From Anthoceros angustus (lineage: Eukaryota > Plantae > Anthocerotophyta), in contig MU008161.1 in NCBI GenBank assembly GCA_010909165.1, forward strand, positions 806,001 to 870,000: 64,000 bases of DNA, read 5' to 3'. The notes below the pieces were generated by a model. It saw only the letters and a program-made list of their open reading frames with translations, was not told the DNA's origin and did no database searches. The position numbers were made by a program, and so were the translations under genes. Of the stretch, positions 3,001-56,650 are shown in pieces. Within the stretch, counting starts at the first letter, position 1. Every line of letters begins with the position of its first letter.

Positions 3001-4063
3001 TTACTATAGTCCTTTTCCATGTGGTTTGGTATTCTGCACCAAGAACAAATAATGTCACCCTTCTTATTACCTCTTGCAAGTGTGAAAGAAGGTGGGGTCT
3101 CTTCAATAAGACTATGTTGTGTGTCATTGGTAGAGCGTTGAGTGAATCCTATGCCACGGCCTCAACCTCTTCCTCTACCTCTGCCAATGAACATCACCTG
3201 CTGTCTACTGGATCGATAATCTTGTCGACGACTTGACTCCTCCTGGATCAATGCTCCAATTAACTCAATAAGACCGATATCCAAATCTTCATCTGAGTCG
3301 TGTATCCCCTTGTTTTTGCGAGCATTTCTCAAAACAACATTTTGAGTTGTTACAAACGATTTGTAGGGGGGTGGTAAGGATGATAAGAGACCAACAAAGC
3401 AGGTTAACTCCGGGAGTTCAGTATTGGATGTAGCTTCCAGTTGTGATCGTGCCAAACGAAATGTATTGACATGGTGTTCGATGGAGTCTGACTTCATTTT
3501 GAGGTTGTGGAAGTTGCGAGTAGCCATCATCAAACTCATAACATCTTTGGTGTAGTATCCCGGAGCTGTGGCCCTTCGGTAAATTCTTCATTCTTCTTCT
3601 AGGTGTTGCATTCATTGGTCTTATGAGTTAGGGCACAGCTATGGTACGGCATGTAGTGCACCATTTCTCACTCCCTTCCTTTGGCTGCTGGACTTGGTGC
3701 AGTGGAATTCGCAGTGGTTCTGCTCAACTGCTTATCCGGACCTCCAACACCCTTCCAGCACCTCATAGCATTGCACAAAGTCATCCTGTGCAATTTCACA
3801 GACAAACCTCTAGAATTTGGTAATTGTGTGTGGATTTGGTGTCTAGTGAAGAGGGATTATGCTTTGATATTCTCAAGTAGCTATAATCACGGGTTTGGCC
3901 CTGCTTGTTTTGCTATAGTTACGAGTTTGGCCCTACTTGTTCTGTGCATAATGTCATAGCTAGCTTGCTGTAGCGATAGCGTGTGTGCTAATATTGTGTG
4001 CGGGGCGGGTTGTAGATGCTTAGTGAGTTTCTTGTATGTGCCTGCAAAAGCGTACTAGGTACT

Positions 4064-36680: not shown

Positions 36681-36841
36681 TGCATAGTTTAGAAAGTCTC
36701 GGAAAGGAAATATATAACTTTGAAGAATACTATTGTAAGCTATATATGCTTGGCTTCCCGGAGGTAATTGTATTCAGAGCATTACTTTGCAGCAGCTTAG
36801 CATTTGGACGAAGGTTGAAGACGTGCTCCGTATCGAAGTGA

Positions 36842-37598
36842 GGCAATTGACCCTGGTCAGAAGTGCGTGAGTTTGCCCTTTCTCTCGGCCGAGGCTGCAG
36901 GGACCGGCAGCCACCAGTAGTAGCAGCAGGAGCAGGCGGGCGCGTGCGCTTGCGCGGGCAGCATCAGTCGGAGGTATCCTCCATCCTTTCTTCTGTGTCC
37001 CGGCGGCACGCTCCCGCCACCGCCATCGCATCGCCATCGTCCTCGCGCCGATCGCACCGGCGGGCACTGCTGGCGCTGGCTGTGGAGCGGAGCGGAGCAA
37101 GGGTTTATGCCCTGATCTTGCGCGCCTTGCGGTAGCCCGATTGGCGCCGCGCCCGCCCGCCAGGTTGCCGTCATCTTTGGAGCAGGCGCCGTCCGATCGG
37201 CTGCTGCCAGGGCGCGAGGCCTAGGGACGCCAGGCTCCCCGGTGGAGCTAGGTAGCCGAAGAGGTGGGGCGCCGGCGCCTGAGCCCTGACCGCTTTTTGT
37301 AGTCCTCGTAAGCTTGCGTGGGGCTGGATGCACGCCTGGTGCTGGCCCGTGGAAAGCGGGATCGTTTTTTGCTCCCTGGTCTAAGGGGAGCGGTTGGCTT
37401 GCTTCCTTGGCTTATGATTCCAGGCCAAATGTCTTGCTACGGGGATACTCATGTTAGGTCTTGGCCCGCTGCTTCTTGCGGCGTGGCCGCTTTCGCGGCA
37501 GTTAATTAGTACTCCGATAGGCGTAGGTGCGGGGATTTTTTGGTCGTGACGCTGTTTGGTTTTGCGGCAGGTCCATGGCGGGGCCTGGAAGCGGAGCG
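36842..37598 (+). promoter_or_regulatory. 5' module of the G3BP gene (upstream region, leader exon, leader intron, first 8 codons), homologous to the GIP1-like 5' module
   Basis: Seven collinear blocks match the reverse complement of 52531-53287, e.g. agggtttatgccctgatcttgc(g/c)cgcc 26/27, catctttggagcagg 15/15, ggagctaggtagc(c/g)gaagaggtg 22/23. Confidence 0.85.
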
Positions 37599-39939
37599 CC
37601 TTCTATCACGGCTTCTGCGAGCGTGGTGAGTGTTTTTTTTGAGGCCCTGTCGTGCACATGTGGACTCGGTGTGATTGTTGGGACAGTGGGGAGCTGGCCC
37701 AGTACTGACGTAAGTGCAATATGCCGATTGTAGGTGGGGAATGCATTCGTCAATCAGTATTATCATGTGCTGCATCAGTCTCCCCAGGTGGTGCATCGTT
37801 TCTACACCGATGCCAGTAAGCTGACTCGTGCTGAAGCTGGGGCCGGTGGAGCCGTTGATACGGTGGAGACCCAGGCGGTAAGCTGCTGGTCTGGCGCGGT
37901 GTTCTGTGAAGGTTAGCTCATGTTTGGATTGGTTGTGTCTCAGTTCGGACATGTTTTGCAGGAGATTCACAATAAGGTTATGCTGCTTGACTACGCGGAG
38001 TCAAAAGCAGAAATTAAGACTGTGGACTCCCAGGACTCCCATCAGGGTGGAGTTATTGTTATGGTTACTGGGTCTTTATCTAGCAAGACCACCGGGAAGC
38101 GGAATTTTGTCCAGACCTTCTTCTTGGCTCCACAAGAAAAGGGCTACTTTGTTCTGAACGACCTTTTCCGGTATCTGGATGAAGCTCCCCAGCAGGTGGT
38201 CCCTGCTGTTCCATTGTCAAATGGTATCCCAGAGCCCCCTCAAGTGCATACTCCTCAGGAGCCAGGTAAGGATGTAGTCCTCTTGTCGAGCAGGAGTTAG
38301 GGTTTTACAAATGTTAAGTTTTTTTTGGGTCCGAACTGTATCCTGTTGTGACGCTTTGTTTTGGTTGTGCATGTGCAGTTTTGGAACCTGCACTGCCTGC
38401 AGAGCATGAAGTGAGGGAGTTGTCTTCCCCCCCTGCCTCTGATGATGAAGCTGTTGTGGAGGAAGGATACGAGCTACCTGACCGTGTTGAAATATCTGAA
38501 CCCGAAGATGATGGAATTTCTGAAGACACAGTCCTTGTTCACGGTGAAGCAGTAGCGCCGGTACTGGATGAGGCACTATCCCCCCTCGTGGAGCCTCCCT
38601 CTGTACAGCCTATCATTGAGGAATCTACTCCTGGAGAGATTCCGAAAAAGTCTTATGCATCCATTGTGAGTACCCATCGTAGAGAACCTCCTGCAGAGTG
38701 ACATTACGGCGGGACTTTTTCTCTGATTTATGATCTGCTTTTCTCATGCTGCTTTCTTTGTGGTATGGTAGCTTCGGTTGATGAAGGAGGGCGGAGGAGC
38801 GCAGTTGTCACCTCCACACTTCAATCCAGCTCCCAAGGTCTCACCTGCACCTGATCGACCTGCTGCTGTAAATGTGCAGCCAGTTGCTACACCACGTTCT
38901 CCTCCTGCACAGCCACAGGATGCATCAGAAGAGACTATTATCGTGGAGAACGAGGGTACGGTTTTGGGTGTTCTGCTTAATCTCATATCCAGTCCTAAGC
39001 ATACTTTGAGATTTCTGCTGACTTGGAGTGTTGTACTTGTCTCGCAGCTGATGGCAGATCGGTGTATGTCAAGAACCTACCCTTGAATGTGACAGCTCCC
39101 CAGCTGGAGGAGGAGTTCGCAAGATTTGGGCCAGTTAAACCTGGTGGTGTGAATGTGAAGAGCCAAAAGGTTTAAGATCTGTTGTCTTGTTACAAGTTTC
39201 GCAACTATCCGGCCTTAACGAATGGTCTCACCCTAATGTTTTCCTCCGCTTGTTTTAACAGCAACAGGGTGTGTGTTACGCGTTCATAGAGTTTGAAGAT
39301 GCGACGTCTGCCCATAGTGCAATAGAGGTACTTGCTGGGTGGCCCATCTTTACTCGGTTTGTCATAGTGCCTCCCTTTTCTTCTGCTGTGACTCAGTTTA
39401 ATCTTATGCCGTGAATGCAGGCTGGATCCACATCTCTGGGTGGCCGTAATGTGTACATTGAGGAGAAGAGGCCTCTGATGCTTCGAGGTAGTATTTGATG
39501 TTCATGGATTGGGCTGACTCAAGATTTAAGTGAAGATTACATCTTGACTTTTCATATTGTGATAGTAGGTGGTGGAAGGGGTCGTCCGCCGGCTGGAAGG
39601 GGAGACCGATCATACCGCCCTGATAATAGCTTGCGTGGTCGGGGAGTGGGAGTTGGTGGCGGTCGAGGAGTGGGAGGAGGGCGTGGTGGCCAGCAGGATC
39701 GCGGTGAGACTTACTACCGGGGCCGCGGTGGCCAGGGTCGTGGTGGTTATGGAGGAGGGTCGAGCCCCAACCTGGTCAACAACTTCGGTGCAAATGCTAC
39801 AGGCGATAACTACCGCAAGAGCGAGAGCCAAGCAGGGAATGTCGGTCCAAAGCCTGTGCGAAGAGGAGCAGGCAACCAGATGCCCCGTAATAATCTGCCC
39901 TTGGCGCATGACGCGCCACCTCCAGTTCCTATTGCTTGA
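37575..39939 (+). CDS. G3BP: G3BP-like NTF2-RRM-RGG RNA-binding protein (stress-granule nucleator family)
   Basis: MAGPGSGAPSITASASV|VGNAFVNQYYHVLHQSPQVVHRFYTD; RNFVQTFFLAPQEKGYFVLNDLFRYL; PKKSYASI; RRM SVYVKNLP..F.RFGPVKPGGVNV..CYAFIEFED; C-terminal RGG repeats; stop at 39937-39939. Confidence 0.95.
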
Positions 39940-41279
39940 CTTGTTGTAAGTGTTGCCTTCTGGAGTGCTGATCGCCGTCCTGACCGCACAGATGAGTTGT
40001 AAGTATGTGCGGCTCAATGTGCTGGAATAGGGTATGCATTCTAGTCGTCATTCAAGTCAGTTCTATGGTTTTCCCACTGTCCTCACTTGCTCTATTAAGT
40101 TAGAAACTTCTCCTGCGGGTGCCCGCCGTTAGATTAGATACGTAAGGATTGGTGACTTTGTTGAGGCACATAGGCTATTGTTCGAAGAGAGATTACATGG
40201 GGTCTCTGTTCTCCATTGCATTTTTGTTTGTCTGCAGAGTGTAGGATTTCAATCCATGGAAGTACGTAGTTCAGTTCCTAGACTGTCTATTTTTGGTGGC
40301 CCTTTGGTGGAGGGTGTAAACTGTCTCAAGCACATACAATCTTTTTATCCTTAGACTTACCACGTGGAGCTGACGGGCGAGCCCTGGTGAATGCGTGATC
40401 GAAATGGTCTTACCGACCACGGGGGCGCCTGGGCTCCAGGCGACAGGTTCCCCTCTGAAGCCGGTTGCCTGTAATCTGGGATTACGTCTTATCGCGGTTT
40501 GTCCAGCGTTAGGTGTCTGTTGGTGCTGATCGTGCGAAGCGAGGAACACTATCACACTGCCGGATTGTCTTGTTTTTAAATTCTTTTTTTCTCTTAGGTA
40601 GTCTATTAATTGTTGCTCATGTTGGTGTAGGGGAAGGAGGAGAGGAGGTCCGTAGCTTTGTGGGCCCCACTGCGAGAAGGGGGCCCACGTTGAAGAGGAC
40701 GTCCGCGACGGCGTGGATGCCCTTGGAGAAGCCTCCACCGACCGCCGCGTAATTCGATAACAGCGGGAATAGCTGGCAGCTGTCACTTGCTTAGGTTTCC
40801 AGCAGTGAAAACTGGAATGTAGATCATTGCATAGTGTGTTAGTTATTGTTTAGCTTGGAAGGCAAGGGCTTTCAGAAAAGCTCATGTACATGCGTAAAGA
40901 ATTAGGACGATCATCGGCCAGTTCGAGTTTTGTACATGATAAGCGCAAATGTGGGGTTAAACTTGTATGAAATAGCTTTAGGTTTTAGGAGTGAATGTAA
41001 CATAAGTATCTTATTGTTTATCCTTTCACCAATAATTTGAAAACCCTGGCCCATAGCTCTCATATGCATCATATCACAAGGTGGCTCCATAATTCTGAGC
41101 TTTCACGTATAGGTATATCCTAGCGCCATAAGTCAAAGCTGGGGTATGCGTAATATCATCAAGATCCAATTGGGTGCACACTCTATGGGCACTGGTAGTG
41201 AAGATTTGCGCGGTATAGTCACAACAACGACGGAATAACCCTCGGCGAAAGCCCTCCAACAATACTCAGGACCCTAACT

Positions 41280-41760
41280 AGGCTAGCTCCTCTACTTCTT
41301 CCTCCAACAAACCTACTAAGAAGACTGGTACATGTAATTGGTCCCAGATTCCTGGTCATTGGGAGAAGGAGTGCAGGAAGAAACATGCTGGGTACTCCAA
41401 AGCATGAACCAAAGTTCGCTAACACCGCCTCAGTTTCTAAGGCTAAGCAAAATGGTGGTTCTGAGATTGCCTTAACAGTGTGCTTGGTAGCAACAGAGTA
41501 CAGGTCCTCTTGGCTGCTTGACTTATCTGCTTCGGCACATATCTGCAGCCACTGGCACATATTTACTACTTACACCTCGGCTGATGATGTGCAACGTTTT
41601 GTACTCATAGGAGATGATTCTGGCCTATCTATAGCGGGACATAGGACAGTTCGCTTTCATCTGGATGATGGTTCCAATTTGCTTCTGTCTAATATTCTTC
41701 ATGTTCCCTAGATGGAGCACTATTTTCCAAGCACAGGGTCCCACCACCGGCCATCCTCTG
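41280..41760 (+). mobile_element. Ty1/Copia gag zinc knuckle plus protease fragment
   Basis: TCNWSQIPGHWEKEC (decayed CCHC knuckle), WLLDLSASAHICS (cf. WYLDSGASAHMC), VLIGDDSGLSIAG, LSNILHVP. Confidence 0.75.
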
Positions 41761-42530
41761 CAATATGTTCCAGGCTTCCAGCCTCTTGCCTCTGGCCTCC
41801 AGCCTTCAGCCTCCATCATGCCATATGGAGAGTCGAAACCTCTCCAAGTCGCCATTTGTCTGCACCGTCGCACATACCGATGCTCTCTCATCACGACCCC
41901 CGGGCTTCTAACTTGTAACCCAATATCTTGCAAAAAAATAGGGTGTAACGTTGTGAGCCACGTATATTACTGAAAAAATGTTCAAGTGTGGTTAGTCCAG
42001 CATAGCGGTCTGCATCCTGCAGGTATATAAGGCAACGCAATAACAACTACAGGGATAGGCACATCTTGATATGCTTGTTAGAAACTTTTAAACATAACTC
42101 ACAATTTTGACAGCGCAAGGCCTTTCTCGTTGCCTGAGCATTGTGCCGTCCTATAACATGTCATGATTTTAAGTTTCTAAAGCAAGCATGCAAGCAAATC
42201 ACTATCGTGCACTTGGTTACGAGGCAAATCAAATTTATTCTATGAACTAAAGGCAAACCAGATCTATATATAGACTGTGAACAAGTTGTTTTTTCCATAG
42301 CCTTACAATTATTCCGCAATAACCCTACAATAATCCCTAAGGTTTGCAGGCGGATGCGCTTCGCAACGCTTTTGCATATATCTCAACAATTATAGATGAA
42401 TGAGGCCATGAAGATATGGCAGAGACAGCTCAATAGGGGTGCATTATCAATGATACATAGGAGCTCACTGGTTCGCCTCTAGATAAATGAACTCAAAGTT
42501 CCTAGTCCCTATTCAACCGAGACTAAGAAC

Positions 42531-42655
42531 TTCGCCGATTAATGCTCTATTGACACAATCAGTATGCGTTAAGAGGTATATGGTGCGTAAAGTTCGCCGA
42601 TTGATGCTCTCCTGGCGCAATCATTATGCGTTAAGAGGTATATGGTGCGTAAAGT
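42531..42655. repeat. Tandem duplication, 62-bp unit, 2 copies
   Basis: ttcgccgatt(a/g)atgctct...tatgcgttaagaggtatatggtgcgtaaagt at 42531 and 42593. Confidence 0.9.
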
Positions 42656-45020
42656 GATGGTTTTGGACAAGCTTGCTTTTGTCCAAGGCTTGGAGGAATT
42701 CATTTTCTTGCAAGAGATGTAAATATGATTCTTGTCTCTGCAAGGGGGTTGTTTGCTAGAAATTGGTCAGACAAAGGGACAAAACAAAGATCATTAGGTA
42801 TATCATTAAGCAAAAGTAAATCAAGATATTGAGGAGATACCACTACGCAATAATCATCGGATATTAGGAAGGATATGTTATTTTCCACTCTAGAATACGG
42901 ACTTATAAGTGATACGATATAATTGATTTATACAATGTGTGATAGCGGTTCTTTTACAATAAAAAAATCTTAGTTATTATTAAACAGTAATACGGCAAAA
43001 TGTGAAGACCATGCCAAACTCCAACGTGTCATATAAGAGATTGAAGGTGAATGAGGTGATTTATTTTCTTCTATGGTTACTCGCGACTTATGGATTGACC
43101 CTTGTATGTGCTCGTGCAAGTGCAAGAATCATAAGACTCTAGTTTATTTGTCATTACTTTGAGACTAAGATACTCTTGGCATTGCAAAATTCTGGTTTTT
43201 CCTAAAATGTGACTCGTCGTAGAGTCGATATGAAATCGATTTTGCTACAAGTACATTATTGTGTAAGAGATTTTGTTGATGCTTAGACCAAGGCTGGTGA
43301 TGTTTATGTAAGTTGAGGTTGATGGTGCCTTGACCACTTATTGAAATCATAGTTCATTCAAAAATGCTAAAATGGTATTATGATATCTCAAGATGTGAAA
43401 AATTTCAAGTCTCAATATCTCACTGTTTAAAGGCTCTATTATTTTTAGTGATGTTTACCTATGAATTATCTAACTATGATGAACTCTTTCTTGCTTTTCA
43501 CTGCATTGTATCTTAGTGCGAAACTAAGATGTTTACGGTTTCATATCACTTCCTAGTGATTATGAGATAAGCATATTTTGTAGAGCTTCAAGTTTTTCTT
43601 TGCAACATCTGCCAAGGCAAAGAGCTAAGTTGAGGGAAGGAGCTTACGTTTAAGCTGAGCGCAGTGCGATGCCCCTTGATTTGCCCTAGGTGAAACCGCT
43701 GCGTAATATGGTTGCGACTCTAAGGCTAGTCAAAGGTAGATGGAATAATATCTTGATTTCGACGTTGTCTAAAATCTCCTTGTTTATTTCTATGACGTTT
43801 CGGGGGAGGCGATACGAGGAGATGTGAGGGGGGCGACTTACATAGTGCCGCTATGGTTTTAAGACACAGCTAAGAATGAAGGCAAACTTGTAAGCGCCTG
43901 GACTGCATCTTTGTAGGGTGCAAGAAAGGGCAATAAATGGGGTAACTAGCAAGATGGTGTAGGATTATGGTGGCTAACGGGCTAGTGGCAGGCTAACTGG
44001 CAAAAGACTTCTTTCTATCATTGACAGGTTTGTTGCCTTGCCTTTACATGTTTCACGTGTCATCTAGAAGCTTATATTTTTGAAACATTCTTGGTTTTGC
44101 TGGACTTATGCACTCTGGAGTTTGTTTGTGGCTTGGCTTTTCGAAGAGCATTGTAATCTAGGTTTTCATGTGCAGATCGAACATGTGTACTTGCTGCTGT
44201 ATCTTTTAATCATGCTACTCTTTTTGGCGTTGGTGTAATTACATCACTAGCAGTGTAGATATAGGGTCAAGAAGAGTTACATGTAGGTAATCGGGCTATG
44301 AAGTGTTGTACAAATAGAAACCTGAACAACTGCTCCATACGCCTTATCTATGTGTTTGTAATAGGATCAAGAAGAGTTTAGGGTTTAGTCCTATCCCACC
44401 GAGATCTATAGTAAAGTAATGTGTGAGTGGCAAGAGAGATAATCTAGGTTATGGGAGACTAGAAGGCGAGATGTGGGCGGTGGCAAGTGGGTACAAGGAT
44501 GGGTTTCCTCTAGTTATCCCAGGGATGGGGGGCCTTTCTTGCCGCGCATCCACTAGCAGCAACCAGTCAGGAAGGACCTTCAATTGCGCAGCAGGGACTG
44601 TATGATCTCCACTTTGCACATGGGGCCTAGTTTTATGAACCGGTTGAGAAAGTTGAGATAGAAGCTTGCTGCCATCGTGCGTCAATTTTGTGAAGGGCCG
44701 CTGTTTCGATGTATCGGATGAAGTGTGTGTTAAATTTCGTTGAATTTCTTATGATGACTAGTAGTGATCCTCCCGCACATGCACCTATATCTTGCTCATG
44801 AGCTTGTGCCTAGAACACTTTGAAAGAGGCCAAAGAAGGGCATCCCGACTGAAACTCCGAGGAGGTTTTCACGCTGGAAAGTACAATTTTGTTCCGATCA
44901 AGGCAACCATAGGCTTGTTGGAAAGCCCATGCAGAGCTTGGCACTAACCTATTTTTTCAGAATTAATATCTAACCACAATGCTTATAGAAAATCAAAAAC
45001 CAAAATGATTGAATTTCATG

Positions 45021-45210
45021 GAAAATAGGAGTTGTTGTTTAGGGGTTAAGATCGCCTTCACAGGACAATCACTTTGGATAAGCCTGACATCACCCCATCA
45101 CCTGAAACAGTCGAGCACACGGATTTCAGGGAAAATAGGGGTTGTTGTTTAGGGGTTTAGATCTCTTTCATAGGACAATCACCTGAAAAAATAGAGCACA
45201 CGGATTTAAG
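45021..45210. repeat. Imperfect direct repeat (~110-bp spacing)
   Basis: gaaaatagg(a/g)gttgttgtttaggggtt(a/t)agatc..aggacaatcac and gagcacacggattt each occur twice. Confidence 0.75.
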
Positions 45211-45745
45211 TGTACGTGAACCGCGTCAGATGAGACGTTTTCCGTACAAAGAAGGTAGCTCAAGGTGGCTAGTGGACCCGTTGTGTAAAGATATTTCAGA
45301 TAATATTTTGAACAAAATAAATAAATTAATAAATTCTAAATAAGTTCTTTAGTCCCATAAGTTTTGTAGATAGCCGTGTATGCGGGTAATGCTCAAGGTC
45401 TTGCCGAGATGGATCGTAGATGGATCGTCAACAAGGCCAACGAGTGTAAGAGCACGGCGTCCTGAAGTTCCTTCCTTGTGGGCTTGGCCGGAAGAACTTC
45501 CAGCCAGGCCCACAGAGTTTTAGCAAAGAAAGAAGTACAGACCACCGAGACTTCAATTGCCTACCTACAGTACACACTGCTATTGGCCTCTCCCATCAGA
45601 TACCAAGACAAAACCATCAGAGTTACTTCAATGTCGTCTTCGAAGTCTGTGAGGCAAGCTAATTTGTTACCCGTGGTCCCACAACAGGGAACAAGCTGCG
45701 CCTTCTCTGAGCTTGAGACTCTGAAAACCTTGCCCAACCCATAAA

Positions 45746-47161
45746 CTATGTGCAGTCTTGTCCCTCACAGCCTTGTTCCGTCTCAGGGGCCACCGGCGTA
45801 TTATACTTATGGCACAGAAACGACGCCCAATTTCTGACCTTGGTAGCATAAAACCTGTCATCTCCGGAGAAAATCTGGGTGGAACATATCCGCAAGAAAG
45901 AGATCCATGCCTGCATAGCTGTGGCATCCTTATTGCCCACAGGCAGGTTTTGCCACAACCACAGATCAGCCAGCACAAGTTGAGTATACAGCTCGAGAAA
46001 CGACGTTCCCTTCCCCAAACTCACGTTCTTGAAAAGCGACACCACATCTGCAGCAGACCGGATCTGGCTCCTCTTGGTGTACATCTGAAGCTGACACAGA
46101 ACCGTCTGGCTCTGGACTTGACTCACGCGGCCATGGAAGGACAGATAGCCCTTCACAAACATGAGACTACTGGCGCCTCCTTCGGCCAGGCGAGCAGCGA
46201 TTCTTCCCAGAACTTCGGGCCAATCAACCTCTGAAAACCAGTCCAGCAGATGCTCCAGGCAGACAGACACGAGTGGCAGAAAGTGCTGAAGCTCACGATC
46301 CGCCACAAAGCCGAGAAGCAGCAGCACCAGCCTCTCCACGTCGGTGACCGAAAAAGTAGCCAAAGCTGGAGGGGAGGAAAAAGCAGCCAGAACCCGGAGC
46401 AAAGAGCGCACGTTCCTGGGGCTCCCGCCTTGCACACCCGCCGAGCAGTCCAGTCCTGGAGCCGGCGCATCCTCCATGTACCCTAGGCCGCGGAAAGTGG
46501 ACAAGAACAAGTCCCCGTCTGGCCTCCACCCACCCCACCTCGGAGAGGAGCGTTCAGCCGGGTCTGCAATTTGACACAGCATCGCACAGGCTGATTCCTC
46601 CGCGGCGGAATCTGGTGAGAAGGCCATGTGATGGAATGCCCAGCGGAAGAAGACATGGTCAATCCTGCCGCTGAGACGGGCTGCCAGAAGCAGGTGGCCC
46701 GAGGACAGGAGCTCCAAGGGCTCTCGGTCCGGCATGAGGTGCAGCGCCATTTCCAGGACCCCGCTCCCGACAGGTGGCGCGGGCACTTCGGCGGGAGGCC
46801 CGAACAGTCTCCTGCCCCATTTGGAAGCCTCCGAAGGCGCCTCCTGGCTCAGCAGTCTCTGCTCGCATTCCTCCACCACGGCATTCAGGGCCGTGATTTT
46901 CTCCTCCTCCGAATCCCCGCTCTCGTCTGAGACTTCCGCGCGCCCGCGCCGGCGACCGCGTCCCCGCCCGTTTGCCGTCCTCCCCCTACTCCCCCATTTC
47001 TGCCGCCGGTTGATGTCCCTGAGCAGGTCGTCCATCCCGATCACCCCCCTTGCCTTCCTCGCCGGCGCCTCCCGCGGAGCCCGCTCGAAGAAGGAGACAT
47101 CGTGCAGCCAGTCCTCAGATTCATCCGCCACCTTCACCTGGAGCTCGTCCTCCCTTCCCAT
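45746..47161 (-). CDS. 471-aa intronless protein, probably SLF2/FAM178/NSE6-like (CANIN-type domain) SMC5/6 complex subunit
   Basis: Single 471-codon ORF: acidic/basic disordered N-terminus, then a helical domain. Motifs FRWAFHHMAFSPD, WRPDGDLFLSTFRGLG, PRNVRSLLRVL..LVLLLLGFVADRELQ and DDRFYATKVRN resemble my recollection of the human SLF2 C-terminus (W.F.MM..HTD, W.P....F..MG, DARLFYRTKVKD). Not verified by search. Confidence 0.65.
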   Translation of the reverse strand: MGREDELQVKVADESEDWLHDVSFFERAPREAPARKARGVIGMDDLLRDINRRQKWGSRGRTANGRGRGRRRGRAEVSDESGDSEEEKITALNAVVEECEQRLLSQEAPSEASKWGRRLFGPPAEVPAPPVGSGVLEMALHLMPDREPLELLSSGHLLLAARLSGRIDHVFFRWAFHHMAFSPDSAAEESACAMLCQIADPAERSSPRWGGWRPDGDLFLSTFRGLGYMEDAPAPGLDCSAGVQGGSPRNVRSLLRVLAAFSSPPALATFSVTDVERLVLLLLGFVADRELQHFLPLVSVCLEHLLDWFSEVDWPEVLGRIAARLAEGGASSLMFVKGYLSFHGRVSQVQSQTVLCQLQMYTKRSQIRSAADVVSLFKNVSLGKGTSFLELYTQLVLADLWLWQNLPVGNKDATAMQAWISFLRICSTQIFSGDDRFYATKVRNWASFLCHKYNTPVAPETEQGCEGQDCT

Positions 47162-47553
47162 GAGGGCGGTGGGGAGGGACTCTACCTGCTCTCACTCGTC
47201 ACCATCCCCCGACAGTGCAATGAGCATGAGCAGATTAAGGAATTCCCGGTTGAGAGGAGACGCTGTGATTCTCAGACTCAAACCACAATGTTGGGCAGGC
47301 TGATGTGCAATAGCGGCCCGAGCCAAGAATGAGAAGCTTCGCTTCTCTTCAATTCGCTCCGCTGGGCTTCACAGTTGCGCGCAAGAACTGAGAAGCGGGA
47401 GTGTCGCAGGCCAGGCTTGGGCAAATCTGCCTGTTTGCGTCAGCTCCACAGCGTTTCGGCTGCTTACGCAAGCAGACTGGAGCCCAACAAATGCTCGCAC
47501 TCAAGAACGCTTAGCTGAACTTGGTACGTCGGCGATGAGTGGGTACCAAAGAC

Positions 47554-47605
47554 TTTCCCGCTCCAACGTTACACATTCGCTTATAAACGTTTAACCTAAC
47601 CCTAA
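47554..47605. promoter_or_regulatory. E2F consensus site (TTTCCCGC, 47554-47561) and telo-box (AACCCTAA, 47598-47605) upstream of the SLF2/NSE6-like gene
   Basis: Exact motif matches about 400 bp upstream of the ATG at 47161. Short motifs can occur by chance. Confidence 0.4.
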
Positions 47606-48263
47606 GGCAACATGGTGCTCAGTTTCAACCGGTCCCAGTCAGCGTAACGAGTAAAGCTCGTTAATGCATGCGGTACCAGAGTACCGTACACAGCTACATT
47701 ACGGGAGGGGCTGACGGGGTGAGGGAGCGTCCGTTCCCGACAGACGAAGGCCACAAGTTTTCCTACATTGCCTTGTGCGCGGACATTTTCGGCAAAGATG
47801 TGTCGACGGCCTTACTCAACGTCGCCATCTCATATCCACCAGGAAACGGTGCTCACTTTCAAAGCATTGGATGAGTGGGCTGTGATGCCGCCGCAGTCAT
47901 GCAAGGTCTCGGGATGAGACACAAAACAAGACCAAACCTGGGAGTAAAACAAATCATCGGGTAGTCTGCCACATCCTAACGTCTTCCACTGGAAGTACAC
48001 CTATTGATGTTCATCGGCTTCAACCTTGTTATGTACACTCTCAGGACAGCCTATTGAAGGCCCCTGCTACAATCTGAGCTACGACCTCTCCCACTCCTCT
48101 CAGCCTAGACAATAAAAGAAGCAAGCCCTCCTAGGTGGCACCATCTCTCATGGCCCCTGGGCCTGTCATGCACCAGATCCCAGGAACTCCCGACGTCCCA
48201 GTGCTGGCTCATCAATACAGTCAAGTCAGTTGCTACATATCCCTTAACCCTCCGGCAAACAAG

Positions 48264-51200
48264 TCAGTAGTTAGTGTTCCATGTCTGTTGAGTGCGTTGT
48301 GGTTGCTGGTAAGCACCCGCTTGGCCACCACTACCTGTTGCTCCAAGGGCCTGGGGCTGTTGAAGTAACTGATGACCACTAGGAGCCGGTCCAGACTGAG
48401 AAGGATGGTGATACAAACTGCCATAACCTGCGCCCGGGTGCCCATGCGCATGTGTGGGTTGCTGCGTGTGGGAGTAACCTGCGTGTTGACCTTGATTGGG
48501 CATGTTGTAGTAGGAACTTGTCTGCAACCCAGCACCACCCATGTCGCGTGACAGTTGAGCTTGGATCCATACCGTGCTGCCCTCGGCCTGCACAAACCAG
48601 ATTTCAAATTACCAACAGCCTCAAGGACTGGCTATCAACTGGGACAACAAAAGACAAAGGAGTTTACCGGTTGCTGAGGGATGTAAATGTTATCCTTGTA
48701 AGGTTGCGGGACATCCTCATATCCGCTTGCCGTCCCGGCGGTCACCGTCGGATTCGATGTATAGCCAGCAGGAGTAGGAGTGTACCCACCGTAGGCCGAG
48801 CCAGCTCCCGAGTGCGGCACATTGCCTGAAGCACTGCCGGGTTTGTACTGCGGCAAGCCATACTTCACACCTCCAGCTCCAGCAGGTGGGTAGCTACTAC
48901 CAGCAGCCTGAGGGTAACTGGTGCCAGCAGGGGGCTGAGGATACCCACTATTTCCAGTGTAACTATGCTGATATGGAGGATGGGGCACGTACGCATAGCT
49001 GGAAGGCATGAACTGATACCCAAAAACGCTTGCAAAATGGCCCACAGGTACTCCTGCCTGGGCTGTATACGCATGTATGGGCACCGCTTGCTGAGGAATG
49101 GCTGGGGCCGGTTGTGCATTTCCTGTCTGAGACGTTTGCACTGATGCACCGGTTGATGGTAGAGAATTCCCAGTCTGGAACAACGGAGACACTTTGAGAG
49201 ATGTACCCAAAGGCACAGACGGAACACCTAAACCGCAGCACCATGTAAAACATACCTCCTGCGATGTTTGAGGACTCTGGAGCCCCATATTCCCATTGAA
49301 TTTGCTGGTTGCATTGCTAGTCAAAAAAGGAGGATACCGGTCCGGATCTGTCCCAGGTCGGAAAGCTGGTGTGTAATAGCTTGGCGTGGGATCTGCATAT
49401 GCCTGCTGCATAAAAGGGTACCTCATTGATGATTAGCTCTCATCAAAAGTCAAGTCTACATCACAATACTATCAAGGACGCAGCGAAGAGCCACGGCAAG
49501 GACGCAGCAAAAAACTCACCATTATATTCGGCAACCTGGAGACATCTGGTGCTGGATCTGGTTCATATGAGTACTGTGGAGATGGTATCTGTGGCATAAG
49601 CCCAAAACCAGGATAACTAGCCACAGCTGGTAACCCGTGGTACGGGTAATGCTGTTGAACAACAGGATCCGGCTTCGACAACTCCAGTTGCTGCACAGCT
49701 GGAACAGGAGTACTTGCAGTCACGTCATTACTAGGCACCAGGCTTTCTGGTGGAGAAGCCACTGGCTGATGGACAAAGTTTTGATTCAGAGATACTGGTG
49801 ATGGACTCGAAACACTGCTGGAAAGACAAAAACGCAAGTGGTCACTTTGGAGAAGTCAAGACAGGCTGGCTTTGAAAACTGAACAACCAAGAAAATTAAC
49901 AAACCTTGTGCTAGGCTGTTCAACAGGAGGCTCAACAAGTGGGACTGCCTCAGAAATAGGCAAGGAATTGTTGATAGGTTCTTCAGGCACAAAGCTTGCA
50001 GAATACGATGTTCCATAGCCTGCAGCAAAACTCCCAAAGCTCAAACCAGTAACTTGGTCTGCCTCTGGCACTTGAAGATGATTCGGTATGATCACTTGTT
50101 GGTCATCCTGGATACTCAGGCCTTGGAGCTTTGCAGTTGCTGAGGCTGTTACACTGGCATCCTGAGCAGGAGCTGGTGCAGATGGAGCTCTCGTAGGCTC
50201 AGGGGAAGCCACTGAGGAGTTTGAAGTTCCAATAGAACTACCTATCCCCAAAGAGTTTGCAATTGACGGTTTAGGCTTCCACTCCAACCCAGATCCACTT
50301 GCTGCCAAACGACATCAGGCAATCAGTTTGATGGCAACTTGAAACTCACTTAGAAAGGGACAAAACATGAAAGCAAGCTGGACATGCACAATAGCTTACA
50401 CTTTTGAGTTCCGACGGGTTGCTGGGCTTGATACCCTGCTCTGCCATTAAACTGGCCCCCACCCAATACTGTTCGGGGCACTGTAGTTGCAGACACATTG
50501 CTTTGAACTGCTCCTGATGACTGACGAGATACTACCCCACCATTTCCAACATCTGACAAGACAGATTGATTGCCCACCCTCTCTGCGACGTCAGCAGTTC
50601 CAACAGGGCTACTTGGGCCAGAGACCAGCACCTCAGATTCAAGGGGAGCACTGCCCGAGGTGGTAGCACTCAAAGAGGGGATGTGAGACTGATGAGAGGG
50701 GGGAGAGATAGAGGTCCCATCACCAATAACCGAAACAGATGGCCTATCTCCTATTGGCCGCTGATTCCCAACCGAGCCAAGCTCACGTTTGATTGTACCA
50801 GGTGTACCAGCACGGGGGTCAAGGGATGGATGAAGCACAGGATCAGTTGAAGAGGAGTACACACCAGATGACACAGATCCAGCAGGAGGGGAAGTGACAT
50901 ATTGCTGAGGTGCAGTAGAAGGTAAAGGTGGTTGGAGAGCAGCAGGAAGTGAAGAAGTTGGTGGGGGTGCACCATTGGACTTGACAATATCAGCCATAGT
51001 TGCATGTCCAGAAGTGGCCACCCAACTTTGACCTACAAGAGCTGTGCGAGCATAGACAGAACTCCCATTGGATAGACTGGGGGCTGAAACAGATGCTGGT
51101 GCAGGCACTGCAGCGGGCGAAGGCATCGAAGCAGGCCCTGCTGCAACAGCAGTTGGTGGGATAGGAGCAGGTGCAGACACCGAATTGCTGCACCAAGGAC

Positions 51201-52554
51201 GAGCAAATTTCTCCATAAGGATAAGAATCACGAGAAGGTGGAGCTTGAAAGTACACACAGGCACACAACGATGTAGCGCAGACATGGGTAACTCATACCT
51301 TGCTCCGGATGGGAAGCCCTTTGCTTGGCTAAAACCCGAGCCAGATGACGCTGTAGCCGACGCCACGCCACTGGAACCACGGTTGCTGGAGTGAATACCA
51401 TTCTCTCGAGGGACAAACTGCTTCCCTCGTCCACCACCATTGTAATCTACAACCCAGGGGAATCATCAATCACAATTACCACCGCCTATCAATGACTACA
51501 AACCACGAGACACCAAAAGGACACTCACCGTTGGAGTAGCGGGGACCACCACTCCCTCTCCCTGCACCACGCTCTGAGGGTCCACTTCTTCCTCCCCTTG
51601 ACGAAGGACCATTCGGCCTTTGCCTGCTTTCACTACCGTCCTTGTTTCCTCCGACCTGGTGAACAAAAGCACAATACAAATAAGGAAACAAGGCGACGAT
51701 AAGGTTGGCAAGCGCAGCACACTAGGTGACGATCCTGTTTGGTGCAAAGACACTCCTCTCCTCACCTCTTTCTTCTTTTCTCGCCGCCGTTTCACTTCAT
51801 GAAAAGGATCTGCGTACAGAGCAGGAAGTTACGTAAGAGAAGAGCTGCGACGACCCACTTTCCAGCTAACTACACGACCTAGAACCATCATGTGGCCTAA
51901 ATCGGGCGGCCTTACGCTCCACAAACCGGCGACCGAACAGGCAAACAACCCAGCTTTGCCAGCGACTGGCAGTCTACAAACTAGGAAGGGCTGAGGGCAG
52001 CTGAGACAAGGCCATCTATCCATCCCAACCATCCATCTCCAAGCGCACGTTATCCTCTGCGTCGCTGAGCCACACTCTACGCGTCCACCTCGGCAACCCC
52101 GCCCGTTCCGAGGGCTGCACATCTCAAGCATCCACTGTCTACAAACCCTCGAGGTAGGTCGGGCGCACAAACCATCCCTCGAGCGGAAGCAAGTGCAACA
52201 ACCCTGACATGCATCTCAACGCGGCGCGGCTTGCACAAGAGCCAGGTTCATCCGATTCAAGATGCAAACGCGCAGCCCAAGCTGAAAGCGAGCAGCAACA
52301 ACAAAGCGCCGCAGCAGAAGCGCAAGGCGCAGAGGCGAGCGTACCCTGGTTGAGCAGCCGCTGCACCGTCTCGTCGGGATCCATGTTACAGTCCCTGAGC
52401 ATGGCGTAGATCTCGTCATCCGTCCCCTGCACCACCTCCTTGAGTTGCTGCACCACCTTGCGAGCATTGGAGGGGATGCCCGCGGAGCTGGAGGCGCTGG
52501 CGCTGGCTGTAGCCGGGAGAGCGCCCCGGCCGCACCACTTCCAGGACCCGCCAT
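48264..52554 (-). CDS. GIP1: GBF-interacting protein 1-like / DUF1296 UBA-like protein (UBAP2/Lingerer-type, low-complexity Q/P/G/Y C-terminus); 1-nt frameshift near the start in this sequence
   Basis: GIPSNARKVVQQLKEVVQGTDDEIYAMLRDCNMDPDETVQRLLNQ|DPFHEVKRRREKKKE; LEWKPKP; VIIPNHLQVPEAD..GLSFGSF; terminal QQTWNTNY*. The ATG at 52554 (MAGPGSGA) is one base out of frame with the domain. Confidence 0.88.
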
Positions 52555-53287
52555 AGGCTTGCCTGCCTGCCTGCCACAAGCACAAAACCGCGCCAGGCGA
52601 GGGGTTAAACCAAGTACCGCATTGAGCTGCTCCACTACACACCACACTGCCACACCTTCGCACACGAGCCAACCAGCAGTCACCACGCAAGACCTAACAC
52701 CATAGTCCTAACCTCCCCCCGGCGCCAGGCACACAACATGGATAGGTTTGGGCCGGCGGCAGGGGGGAGAATTGAGGCCCGGCTATCCGTTCCGCTGTTC
52801 CGTCAAGGCAAAAGAGCGGCAAGATCGGCGGCCGCGCACAACACAGCAGAACCGCAGGCCTCACCTCTTCCGCTACCTAGCTCCGCAGCGGGAGCGGGCC
52901 GTCCGTGGCGCAGGCGATCGCACGCAGCGCACCGCCCTGCTCCAAAGATGGCAGCGGCCTAGGCCCGGCCTGACCTGGGTGTGGGGCGGGCCCGGCTCCA
53001 CTCGGCCCTGCCTCTGCCTGCACACGGCGGGCAAGATCAGGGCATAAACCCTGGCCGGCCACCAACGTCCTTCCTCCTGCTGCAGCCACGCCTTGCCTCA
53101 GAGGGGCACCAGCGCTCCTCCGATCAAAAGAGGGGAGGAGGGAGGCAGCGCCGCCGGCACGACAGGGACACGGATGATAAACGCTACGATACTGATGATG
53201 CCCGCGCTCGTCTCCCGCCTACTCCTCCTGGCTGGCTCCACAGACTTGGCGGCAAACAGCAGCTCTCCTGACCATGGTCAAATAGCC
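52531..53287 (-). promoter_or_regulatory. 5' module of the GIP1-like gene, inverted homolog of 36842-37598
   Basis: Same collinear blocks as the G3BP module, in reverse complement (52531-52554, 52688-52699, 52862-52884, 52936-52950, 53026-53052, 53191-53226, 53251-53287). Confidence 0.85.
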
Positions 53288-54699
53288 CTCTTTGCTGTAC
53301 GTTCCCGGGTTATGCAAAAATCAGGCAACCATTTCCATCAGGGTGCAGTAAACTTTGTTACGCGCGTACAACTATCCTTTACCCTATTCCATGGTCTTTT
53401 TTCACACCCTGTTATGTACATACATCCTAAAGTTCATATATTTGACTTATCCAATCACTCTCATATATACCAAATCGGATCTTCAAGTCTTTTCAGAATC
53501 TCTCTTTATGGAGATCGCTATACCTAGTAAATAAAACTCTATTGAATGCTTTGTATAACTGACAGTAACTCCATTTAATATTTTTATTGACTATTATTAA
53601 GTAACAATCTCACATAAAATAATTGATGTACAACAGGCTCCACGATTGCACAAGACGAGGTGACTATTGGGTGATAGCTAGAGCTTTGAGTGTCGGGCTT
53701 CATGACAAGGTGTCCTTGGGGTGCTTGATCTTTAACTTGTAACAGAACGTCCGTGCCTACACAAAACAATGGTATCAAATAGGCTCCTCACCTATCATGA
53801 GAAACGTGAGCTTACCACTAAGGTGTAAAGCATAGAAACACAAAGACTTCACATTGCCCCACAAAGCTGCAAGAATTAGAGACTCGTATCTCTCTCTTGC
53901 GAAGCTCGTGCAACCACATACCAGTTGACCACACAAGCAGAACTCTAACACAAAGAGCTACACATCACAAGAGAAATCATGGGTGGGAGTCATGTTTACT
54001 GCTCTTCCATTACTTTATTGGTATAATGATGGGGGAGGGTTTTATAGCACCTTCTCTTCCAATAACATTACCCTTTTCAGATTTAGACAACCATCGCAAC
54101 ACGAGAATGATAGCCTTGCAGGAAAAAAAAGGTATGGAAGCAGTTGAGGTAAAAAATTAAGTTAATATAGTCCTTTTTTCTTTACAATATGATTGGTGGA
54201 TGTGCAGAGTGTATCGAATATCATAAAACAATGGACAATGAGGTCGTGTTTTGTGACAATGGACATTGTAAGACCAAATAAAAAAAACCATATTTTTCTC
54301 GATGCACCTTTTGTAGGGTATCTTCTATGATATGTCTTGGTATTTCATAAGTAGTTCATAGTTTTACACCAATTATGGAACCTCATGTACAAAACTATTT
54401 TTTCTCTTTTATTTAGATAGCAACTGACTTTATATACAAGCTGACTCTATAGGTATACCAAAATATATCCATATTTGAACCTATTTCCCCAAGTGTATTA
54501 CGGATGTACCTAGGTCAAAATGAATTCATTGCTTGGGCCATGGATGCTGCAATGCAGAAGGCCTCGAAGAAGAAGAAGTATATTTTAGTAACATGAACTG
54601 ACCGGCCTTTGCTATTTCACAGTGAAAAATGTTCTTTTGCTTGAATCCGAATTGGATCCTGCACAGTACATTCAAGAGAGCGTGCGTCCTGCCTAGCTC

Positions 54700-55450
54700 C
54701 AAGGATCGGTTGCCTTTTCAGCGTGGAGGCAGTCGGCGTACGAAGAGGGACAGATACACATCGCTCTGTTCTGGATGCCATATTCGCCATTCCGGGCTCG
54801 GTTCGGTGTTTTTTCCAGGCTTGTGATGAGACCTGGAATGGGGGCCGCCAGCCCCCCTGGCGTCCCCTTCAATGCTTGCAAGGTCGTCCTGCAATTCAAG
54901 GGCTTGGTACTGAGAACGGCCGCTGAGATCCATGCCATCGTGAGAAGTGCAACATCGATCCCAGTCAGTCGGTGCAGCGGCTGCTCGACCATTGAAGGCT
55001 ATCCTTGCTGGTCCCTGCCCCTGCCCATGCTGATGGCGCAGCCAGTCCAACATTAGTTGTTGCTGTTGAACAATTTGAACTGGCCAGAGGGTTTCCTTCT
55101 TGAATCGAGTGCACCTGCCTCTCGTTCGCTTCGCCCCGAGCTGTTCTCGGATATGCAGGTCAGGACCTGTCATGTTGTTCACTCCTGCGTCGTTCTGTTT
55201 CGTATGCCTGACCTATCTCGGCCTGATTGAATTCTCTGAATGGTTGATTTTGCCGAGGCGAAGGCATGGGATATGGCTGAGACGGGCGCAGAGGATGACG
55301 TGTTTGTAAATCGTCGCACACCTGACAGGCTGACTGGAACGACTTAATGGTTGGGAACCACGCCGGTGTTAAGACTGCTTGGGAGCTGGCTTCTTCGGAT
55401 ACGCAGCTTCGTATGCTCCTACATTCAAGTGGAGGTTAGATGATGCCGGC
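54700..55450 (+). pseudogene. Decayed partial duplicate of the GIP1-like 5' end (acceptor, exon 1, intron 1), inverted relative to the gene
   Basis: ATG at 54826 gives MRPGMGAASPPGVPFNACKVVLQFKGLVLRTAAEIHAIVR (cf. GIPSNARKVVQQLKEVVQGTDDEIYAMLR), then a frameshift to CNIDPSQSVQRLLDH. Intron-1 matches continue (tcttgaatcg, ttgccgagg, gcgcagaggatgacgtg, atggttggga). Confidence 0.85.
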
Positions 55451-55539
55451 CCTGGAGGATCGGAGGATGCGAAGTCGGGTAACTGGTGACACCGTTGTTG
55501 AACTTGGAGCAGGTCAAACTGGCTCAGGCCGTGAAGTGT

Positions 55540-56650
55540 CTGGGGGTTCTGGTGCAGGCAGACTGTGGTGTTGACAAATCTTTCATACTATCCTGAAGGA
55601 GTGTGGGGCTAAGAAGGATCTGCTTCTGGGCCGCAGTCTTCGTGCCCTCGTGGTGGGAAGGGGGTATGAGGCGGACACATTCTCGTACAACCTCATTTTT
55701 CGAGCCTCTCATGTATGCCAGGTTGGAAAAAGCGATGGATGTGTTCAGGGGTTCTCGAACCAGATGCCTTCACGTGGTCTTCCATAATTTCTGCCCATGT
55801 TAAAGTGGGACAAGCTAACCAGGCCATACAGCTGTATCATGGAATGCGCAGGTCAACTGTGAAGCCAGATGGCCATGTGTTTGTGGCAGCTACAGGCTTG
55901 GTCAAGGGGAGCAGCCTCGGGAACTGGAGAGTAGATGCATGCTGATGTGCTGGCCAGACCAGTGGTGTTGAGCCTCCTTTGTTTGTGTGTAGTTCCTTGG
56001 TGGGCATGTATGCAACGAGTGGCAGCTTGCAGGATGCACAAAGGGTAGCACCCCGTTCTGCGACATTTTTATGCCTCCTGCAGGCCTGGGGTTTTAGGGT
56101 ACTCCTGGCTTGGAGAAGGGGAAGCTGCTGCATGCACATATCAGAGAACTAGGACATGAAGCTGACTTGTCTGTAGGCAACAGTTTCATAACATGTATGC
56201 AAAGTGTGTCAGTCTCCAGGATGCTCAGAGAGTCTTCGACAGACTTGGTCAAAAAGATGCGGTGACATGGACCGCTTTGAAAGCAGGATACTATACTCCC
56301 AGCAAGGCACGGCGTCATTGACTGGTCTGATAATTGGGTGAAGAAGCCCTTCATCTTTATGGCGCTGTGCTAGCGTGCTAGCAGGAGGCACACAAATGTG
56401 CCTCCTTCAGGCCTGTCCAAGTGTAGGTATTCTGGCTTCGGGGAAATAGTTTCATCCGCAGATGGTACAGCGAGGACTTCATGTGGATGGGGTTGTAGCC
56501 TGCAGCCTTGTAAACAGGTCTATGAAGTGGAGCAGTCCTCATGATGCCCACGCCTTGTTTGACCAGCTTGCGGAAAAGGATGTGGTCCAGTTCCACACGA
56601 CAAAAAGCATCCACAGAGTAAATGCAAGGCTCGAGCAGTTTTCTACCAAA
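55540..56650 (+). pseudogene. PLS-class pentatricopeptide repeat (PPR) pseudogene
   Basis: FHTILKECGAKKDLLLGRSL.ALVVGRGYEADTF; PDAFTWSSIISAHVKVGQANQAIQLYHGMRRSTVKPDGHVFVA; FVCSSLVGMYATSGSLQDAQRV; VVACSLVN...DAHALFDQLAEKDVV. Multiple frameshifts and internal deletions. Confidence 0.88.

Follow-up and report, generated by a model that had tools for sequence, protein, structure and literature searches.

Contig MU008161.1 of the Anthoceros angustus (Anthocerotophyta) assembly GCA_010909165.1 carries, between its positions 806,001 and 870,000, a G3BP-like gene on the plus strand and a gene of the GIP1/DUF1296 type on the minus strand, and the two share a module of promoter, leader and start codon that is present once in front of each gene, in inverted orientation. 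We refer to these 64,000 nucleotides (nt) as the window, number positions from its first letter, and call the module in front of the G3BP-like gene the left copy and the one in front of the GIP1-like gene the right copy. As argued below, the GIP1-like gene is probably a chimera that is headed by a copied, inverted 5' end of the G3BP-like gene.

Judged by its sequence, the left gene is a bona fide G3BP with NTF2, RRM and RGG parts. Its N-terminal NTF2 domain matches Pfam family PF02136 with E = 1.2e-23 in exon 3 and 3e-8 in exon 2, its C-terminal RRM matches PF00076 (RRM_1) with E = 7e-5, and the G3BP-type tail is present as RGG/GRG repeats after the RRM, in the open reading frame (ORF) at 39544-39939. 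The closest full-length relatives are the G3BP-like proteins of Sphagnum, Calypogeia and Physcomitrium, with 69-73% identity over the NTF2 exon. The sole close relative that we compared is a 19-kb Logan contig from sample SRR33208241 (L001; 14.8 kb examined), which is the best relative of the NTF2 exon in the window, with 85-90% amino acid identity in the NTF2 exons, and whose G3BP gene is collinear with that of the window from the leader through the 3' untranslated region (3'UTR). Within the 3'UTR the stretch 40100-40251 (+) is conserved relative to L001 12245-12399 (62-93% in tblastx pieces) while the introns are saturated, and this stretch is possibly a candidate regulatory element. The right gene has GIP1_N (PF06972) at its N-terminus, with E = 5e-20 and above the gathering score. 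Its exon 2 carries the canonical DPFHEVKRRREKKKE at a textbook junction, LLNQ/DPFHEVKRRREKKKE, and behind it come exons of low complexity, about 1000 codons in all, whose splice sites are normal.

The shared module is well supported by several measures. The blocks quoted in the sequence-only reading of this DNA were all recovered by pattern counts and alignment, each twice in the window; AGGGTTTATGCCCTGATCTTGC (37100 and 53052), GGAGCTAGGTAGCSGAAGAGGTG (37244 and 52884), CATCTTTGGAGCAGG (37172 and 52950) and TGTTAGGTCTTG (37452 and 52699) each have exactly 2 copies, one per strand, against a chance expectation of 0-0.2 copies per quoted block. The local alignment of 37097-37270 with 53055-52858 scored 88, compared with 23 +/- 2.4 for dinucleotide shuffles, and blastn of the left against the right module gave E = 7e-8. 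The extent of the module, which that reading had set from 36842/53287 to the eighth codon, needed revision at both ends. The homology, weak at its outer end, starts earlier, at about 36817/53310, and the coding regions, said to be unrelated after codon 8, remain homologous to about 37623/52501, the end of the 17-codon first coding exon of G3BP, with PSITASAS on the left facing LPATASAS on the right and a net gain of 5 nt in the right copy. As a further correction, the left ATG lies at 37575-37577, and the three differences within codons 1-8 are indeed all synonymous. The similarity claimed for the leader intron stands for its 12-mer and fails for the rest of the intron, which is not significantly alignable (z = 1.6, where z is the global alignment score against shuffles); the non-coding first exon accounts for most of what the left and right copies share (z = 27.7). 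Overall the left and right copies are about 55% identical, that is about 45% diverged, so that this is an old duplication rather than an artefact of the assembly. A proposed extension of the left-right homology further upstream, to the TATATATG boxes, was dropped when the alignment gave it no support.

The direction of the transfer can be read from the outgroups. The left module alone matches L001 8810-8876 significantly (blastn, E = 8e-9), and 5' of the G3BP gene in L001 the same elements follow in the same order, GTCTTTGCCCTTTC...GGCAGCCAGCAGTAGCAGCAGG, TGCTCTGATCTTGC and CATCTTTGGACCAAGCGCCGTTGGATCGG, and then the leader-intron donor GGAGATAAATAGTCGCAAGG/GTGAGA. The L001 leader intron contains TTAGGTCTT and has its acceptor 4 nt before the ATG, and the first coding exon, MAGPMGGQPGSGGAAVPATASV (MAGP...GSG...PATASV), is the same exon in the same phase, with a phase-0 intron preceding VGNAFVNQYY. 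In the G3BP of the liverwort Calypogeia fissa the same small exon, MAGQPSSTASPLPAAAHV/V, comes first in the coding sequence, and an AG lies 5 nt upstream of its ATG. Both L001 and Calypogeia thus have the leader-intron donor as well as an acceptor 4-5 nt upstream of the ATG; moss and liverwort G3BPs begin MAG/MAN...AAHVVGNAF. From these sequences, the small first coding exon is seen to be a G3BP feature back to the liverworts. No GIP1_N sequence was found in the 14.8 kb of L001. Because the module sits 5' of G3BP in L001 and the first exon is shared by the liverwort G3BP, the GIP1-like gene is the recipient, and its 5' segment is homologous to an intact donor whose identity is backed by the outgroup. 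The sequence-only reading that one gene took over the 5' unit of the other is thus borne out, and the comparison with L001 and Calypogeia gives the direction, from G3BP to GIP1.

Beyond codon 8, and past a brief run of indels, the right copy reads GCT CTC CCG GCT ACA GCC AGC (ALPATAS), where L001 has GCC GTT CCA GCC ACT GCC AGC (AVPATAS) and the left copy has ...ATC ACG GCT TCT GCG AGC (ITASAS). The junction itself lies at about 52501/52495, where ...PATAS/ASASSSAGIPSNARK reads in a single frame; ALPATAS continues in frame as ASASSSAG-IPSNARKVVQQLKEVV, the GIP1_N domain, and the A-L-P-A-T-A-S codons are in frame with ASSSAGIPSNARK of that domain. Since one frame runs from ALPATAS into GIP1_N, the original fusion was in frame. 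The coordinates of the features are collected in Table 1.

Table 1. Coordinates of the module copies, the two genes and the decayed GIP1 fragment in the 64-kb window
Feature	Positions	Strand	Basis or detail
Seven collinear blocks	36817-37625 vs 53310-52501	+ vs -	Global alignment, as far as the ATGs
Left (native G3BP) core promoter and non-coding first exon	36817..37263	+	Blocks at 36842, 36952, 37100, 37172, 37244
Left leader intron	37264..37570	+	Donor GAAGAG/GTGGGG, acceptor gcggcag/GTCC ATG; predicted from splice signals
G3BP first coding exon	37571..37625	+	ATG at 37575, 17 codons MAGPGSGAPSITASASV, donor GT at 37626
G3BP-like gene (NTF2, acidic linker, RRM, RGG tail)	37575..39939	+	Pfam, relatives, collinearity with L001
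GIP1/DUF1296-like gene, about 1000 codons	48264..52554	-	Long open exons, canonical splice sites read from sequence
Native GIP1 part of first coding exon	52345..52500	-	GIP1_N at 52477-52346; Pfam 5e-20
G3BP-derived start codon and N-terminal codons (MAGPGSGAAG..ALPATAS)	52501..52554	-	Codon match to L001
1-nt deficit GCCGGGGCGCT	52518..52530	-	ATG in frame A, everything downstream in frame B
Right leader intron	52563..52864	-	Donor GAAGAG/GTGAGG; three candidate AG acceptors at 52571, 52567, 52563
Right copy of G3BP non-coding first exon and core promoter, heading the GIP1-like gene	52865..53310	-	Alignment, blastn
Sequence just 5' of the PSI homology boundary	54826..54843	+	In-frame ATGs at 54826 and 54838 after ttttttccag acceptor; putative original start of GIP1
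PSI, decayed inverted copy of GIP1 exon 1 (from about codon 3) and about 300 nt of intron 1	54844..55302	+	tblastn, blastn, Smith-Waterman

A decayed fragment in the window seems to hint at what the GIP1-like gene looked like before the fusion. A tblastn search with GIP1_N unexpectedly matched 54844-54992 (+) with E = 2.6e-7, and in the nucleotide sequence the longer stretch 54844-55302 (+), which we call PSI, aligns with 52495-52046 (-) of the GIP1-like gene with a Smith-Waterman score of 270, compared with 35 +/- 5 for shuffles; over the exon, blastn gave 74.5% identity across 149 nt with E = 1.6e-21. PSI lies 2.3 kb upstream of the live GIP1-like gene in the opposite orientation, and it is dead: its frame is shifted near 54948-54963, the splice donor is lost and there are radical substitutions. 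No more than 6 nt separate the start of its homology to GIP1 from the end of the G3BP-derived homology. Upstream of this point PSI reads ...ttttttccag/GCTTGTG ATG AGA CCT GGA ATG GGG, a sequence that resembles neither copy of the G3BP module in the window nor the one in L001 (scores of 18-20, equal to the shuffle mean). A likeness around CCTGGAA/ATG, spotted by eye, had raised the idea that PSI also bears the module; the local alignment scores, again equal to the shuffle mean, led us to discard it. The simplest reading of these alignments is that PSI would retain the 5' end that a GIP1 copy had before the fusion, its native start lying some 2-6 codons upstream of the junction. Directly after PSI, at 55400-56620 (+), lies PPR-like sequence that is 30-50% identical to PPR/DYW genes of L001 (tblastx) and has no ORF of at least 90 amino acids on the plus strand; it is probably a broken PPR gene. 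This PPR-like sequence was also considered as a sign of synteny with the upstream PPR genes of L001 and was set aside, the identity being 30-50% and the orientation different.

Taken together, the alignments lead to the following scenario. The core promoter, the non-coding first exon, the leader intron, the start codon and the first 18-24 or so codons of the GIP1-like gene would descend from the 5' end of G3BP, copied in inverted orientation 15 kb from the donor, and this copy would have been joined in frame to GIP1 near its third codon, so that the GIP1-like gene's own 5' end was replaced. The blocks TGCYCTGATCTTGC, CATCTTTGGASCARG, CCCGCC and the stretch that ends in the leader-intron donor may be leader or promoter elements of G3BP, and with the blocks kept in both genes the GIP1-like gene could be under G3BP-like transcriptional and/or translational control. 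A staggered-break inversion model for the two inverted repeats was also considered and rejected, by reasoning only, as the adjacencies that it predicts do not match the present order.

The state of the leaders bears on the age of the copy and on selection. For the leader intron, z was 1.6 between left and right, -0.3 between left and L001 and 0.1 between right and L001, while the non-coding first exon with the core promoter gave 27.7, 20.3 and 5.0 in the same comparisons; two orthologous G3BP introns, compared between the window and L001, gave 4.1 and 0.5. On these scores neutral sequence is saturated in every comparison and the 5' exon is clearly constrained in both copies and in the orthologue, and the saturated leader introns indicate that the copy is very old. 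L001 is 70% identical to the left copy within left-right runs of at least 8 matches and 47% elsewhere (Fisher p = 7e-5), with the qualification, which tells against the inference, that the alignment was anchored on those same blocks and that one close relative was included. The suggestion that the patchy conservation reflects selection looks right from this difference and from an exon kept while the intron became saturated, and the pattern speaks for purifying selection on leader or promoter elements more than for a patchy conversion of the two copies by each other. As for what the elements are, of the tandem donors at the end of the exon only the second (AAGAG/GTG) is conserved, and a three-codon upstream ORF (uORF), ATG-CCC-TGA, lies inside one block in both window copies and is absent from L001, which has GTGTGCTCTGA at that position. 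The blocks fall in the presumed 5'UTR exon and at the donor of the leader intron. Neither module matched an Rfam family, and the conserved core TGCYCTGATCTTGC could be assigned to no function and no motif family already known. From the three 5' exons RNAalifold had the CCCGCC block pair with that donor, a proposal that was not used, three sequences having no statistical power.

Several observations weigh against the proposed history, and one of them is a frame break close to the copied ATG. At 52530-52518, after codon 8-10 or so, the right copy would need one more base to keep to a multiple of three when set against L001 and the left copy, and as assembled the ATG at 52554 and GIP1_N fall in different frames. 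None of the first three AUGs is in the frame of GIP1_N (frame B), in which the first AUG lies inside the domain, leaving no in-frame AUG 5' of it; reading from the ATG meets a TGA in exon 2 after some 77 codons, and there is no uninterrupted ORF from the donor start codon. The claim of a shared eight-codon start therefore holds for the codons and not, as assembled, for continuity of frame with GIP1_N. Because the remaining 1000 or so codons are intact and the differences in codons 1-8 are synonymous, we think that the break is probably an assembly indel or a very recent mutation and not an old lesion. What the GIP1-like gene shows here is probably a single-base error of the assembly, or else a fresh null allele. 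In addition, the use of the module by the GIP1-like gene, with its transcription start site and leader intron, is inferred from sequence signals only. The search for homologues of the 183-amino acid ORF that spans the first GIP1 exon returned none in the allowed length range, and a scan of JGI metagenomes with GIP1_N peptides confirmed 0 of 600 pattern matches. Lastly, intron 1 has diverged much less between PSI and the GIP1-like gene (z = 24, 73% identity) than the leader intron has between the left and right copies, which a single old event does not predict unless there was gene conversion between PSI and GIP1. As inverted repeats at a distance of 2.3 kb, PSI and GIP1 exon 1 may have been homogenised by such conversion; PSI may also be a later partial copy whose boundary matches the junction by chance.

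The low divergence of PSI leads to a different history, in which the right module began as the 5' end of a second G3BP paralogue, since lost, that functioned for a long time, and GIP1 captured it later, at about the time when PSI and GIP1 exon 1 separated, so that the blocks of the right copy would mostly record a past life with G3BP and not a long period of selection at the head of GIP1. The left and right leader introns are as saturated as the orthologous G3BP introns of the window and L001, and if PSI predates the fusion, the 73% identity still seen in intron 1 (z = 24) would make the fusion younger than the left-right split. The right copy moreover keeps L001-like states that the left copy has lost, namely TTAGGTCTT..TGGTGACTG, shared by the right and L001 leader introns, GTGAG.C.TG.GG and PATAS. 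Set against this, tblastn revealed no other G3BP exon remnants in the window, and gene conversion between the 2.3-kb inverted repeats explains the low divergence of PSI and GIP1 equally well. The left and right copies also both lack the five-codon MGGQP stretch of L001, and the site patterns (left = right at 188 sites, left = L001 at 145, right = L001 at 94), together with this shared absence, point weakly to left and right copies that parted later than the L001 lineage branched off, in a comparison that has no alignable outgroup. On balance we regard the lost-paralogue history as unlikely, though it deserves to be kept in mind.

The remaining explanations carry less weight still. It could be argued from the frame break, with ATG 52554 in frame A, GIP1_N in frame B and the first frame-B AUG inside the domain, that the right module is a non-functional relic and that the GIP1-like gene is a fresh pseudogene or uses another promoter and start, the 77-codon ORF making its transcript a target of nonsense-mediated decay; the approximately 1000 intact codons with canonical splice sites, the synonymous differences in codons 1-8 and a non-coding exon conserved far above the neutral level make this quite improbable. 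We give very little credence to a transfer in the opposite direction, with the module native to GIP1 and acquired by G3BP. The symmetry of the repeat is all that favours it, and it has to contend with a module 5' of G3BP and no GIP1_N in L001, with the small MAG...V exon and phase-0 intron before VGNAF in the liverwort G3BP too, with a right-hand homology that stops at the end of the G3BP exon, and with PSI being different upstream of GIP1 codon 3. It could also be that the module is a dispersed repeat or transposon remnant, or the inverted copy a local misassembly, both of which the sequence-only reading had named as refutations, and there are GC-rich stretches of low complexity. Little speaks for either: there are only 2 copies in the window, the position is conserved in orthologous sequence of L001, and copies that are about 45% diverged rule out an artefact of duplicated reads. 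No look-alike module turned up in the index searched, a blank of little weight, and a metagenome DNA scan for CTGATCTTGC-N40-70-CATCTTTGGA gave 72 loci, all chance matches and none with G3BP or the module. An explanation by repeats or misassembly is hardly believable. Capture of the G3BP 5' end by the GIP1-like gene seems to us the best account of the locus.

Whether the two proteins are linked is a separate matter. The sequence-only reading described the GIP1 family as generally regarded to be the plant UBAP2-like family, and neither Pfam nor the literature supports this. No paper found in the literature search joins DUF1296 and UBAP2, a review of plant G3BPs mentions neither, and on the central exons no Pfam family was found at E <= 10, including the UBAP2/Lig central domain (DUF3697 type), nor any PDB match. 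What relation there is between GIP1_N and a UBA domain comes down to a weak hint from PDB entry 1wj7, which we take to be UBAP2L (UBA domain), at a non-significant E = 1.3. The GIP1-like protein does have an FGDF-type motif, FGSF within VTGLSFGSFAAGYG, encoded in a central exon at 50037-50026 (-). FGSF has been cited as a type of G3BP-binding motif in plants (PMC8222905), and DUF1296/GIP1 proteins recur in plant mRNA-bound proteomes and RNA-binding proteomes (PMC7226388). Because of the motif and of the presence of DUF1296 proteins in these proteomes, a physical link between the GIP1-like protein and G3BP is plausible; the literature searched holds no binding data for any plant GIP1-G3BP pair. 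There is a likeness to the animal network of G3BP with UBAP2L, Caprin and USP10, in which FGDF-type ligands meet an NTF2-like pocket, in that the donor is a G3BP with NTF2, RRM and RGG parts and the recipient is long, disordered and of RNA-interactome type, with a possibly UBA-like N-terminal domain and FGSF. Unlike animal UBAP2L, the recipient has no UBAP2/Lig domain that could be found.

Other parts of the window hold sequence of a different kind. Between the two genes, at 45746-47161 (-), lies a GC-rich single ORF of 471 amino acids without a Pfam domain, and no homologue of it was found among 5.8 billion proteins (0.55-1.75x length range). At 2747-3539 (-), ORFs for a Copia-type reverse transcriptase and a gag-like protein mark a retrotransposon fragment.

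Chimeric genes that arise by partial (5') duplication or by capture of a promoter or first exon are well known, and include jingwei and Sdic in Drosophila as well as chimeric duplicates in plants. As in these, the recipient here gained a promoter, a 5'UTR, a start codon and first codons, an unrelated donor stays intact nearby, and the junction is in frame. Unlike them, the copy in the window is inverted, local (15 kb) and very old and has kept near-perfect non-coding blocks, and the recipient's own first exon has left a fossil 2.3 kb upstream, in opposite orientation. The ancient capture of a G3BP 5' end by a GIP1/DUF1296 gene is, as we read it, a clear case of a known type of event and not an unprecedented one. 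The blocks also resemble the conserved 5'-leader elements and uORFs of plants, in that short blocks in a long, GC-rich leader have outlasted the saturation of the intron; unlike conserved uORFs, the one in the window is not kept in the orthologue.

It can be speculated, and we consider it a long shot, that the leader blocks serve post-transcriptional control of the G3BP mRNA, for example through stress-resistant or G3BP-autoregulated translation or through splicing of the leader intron, and that their capture by a GIP1-like messenger ribonucleoprotein (mRNP) protein bearing FGSF would have coupled the dosage of direct condensate partners and been kept by selection since. Irrespective of this, the locus presents a natural promoter and leader swap that is unusually well resolved, since a span of 20 kb holds the donor, the recipient, the junction and a fossil of the end that was replaced. 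The two leaders are now so far diverged that the constrained positions alone are left, and the locus is in effect a ready-made mutagenesis screen for the functional elements in the leader of a plant G3BP. The co-regulation of both genes, an attractive idea, would, if true, be a concrete case of regulatory coupling between two proteins of the mRNP/stress-granule type by a structural mutation.

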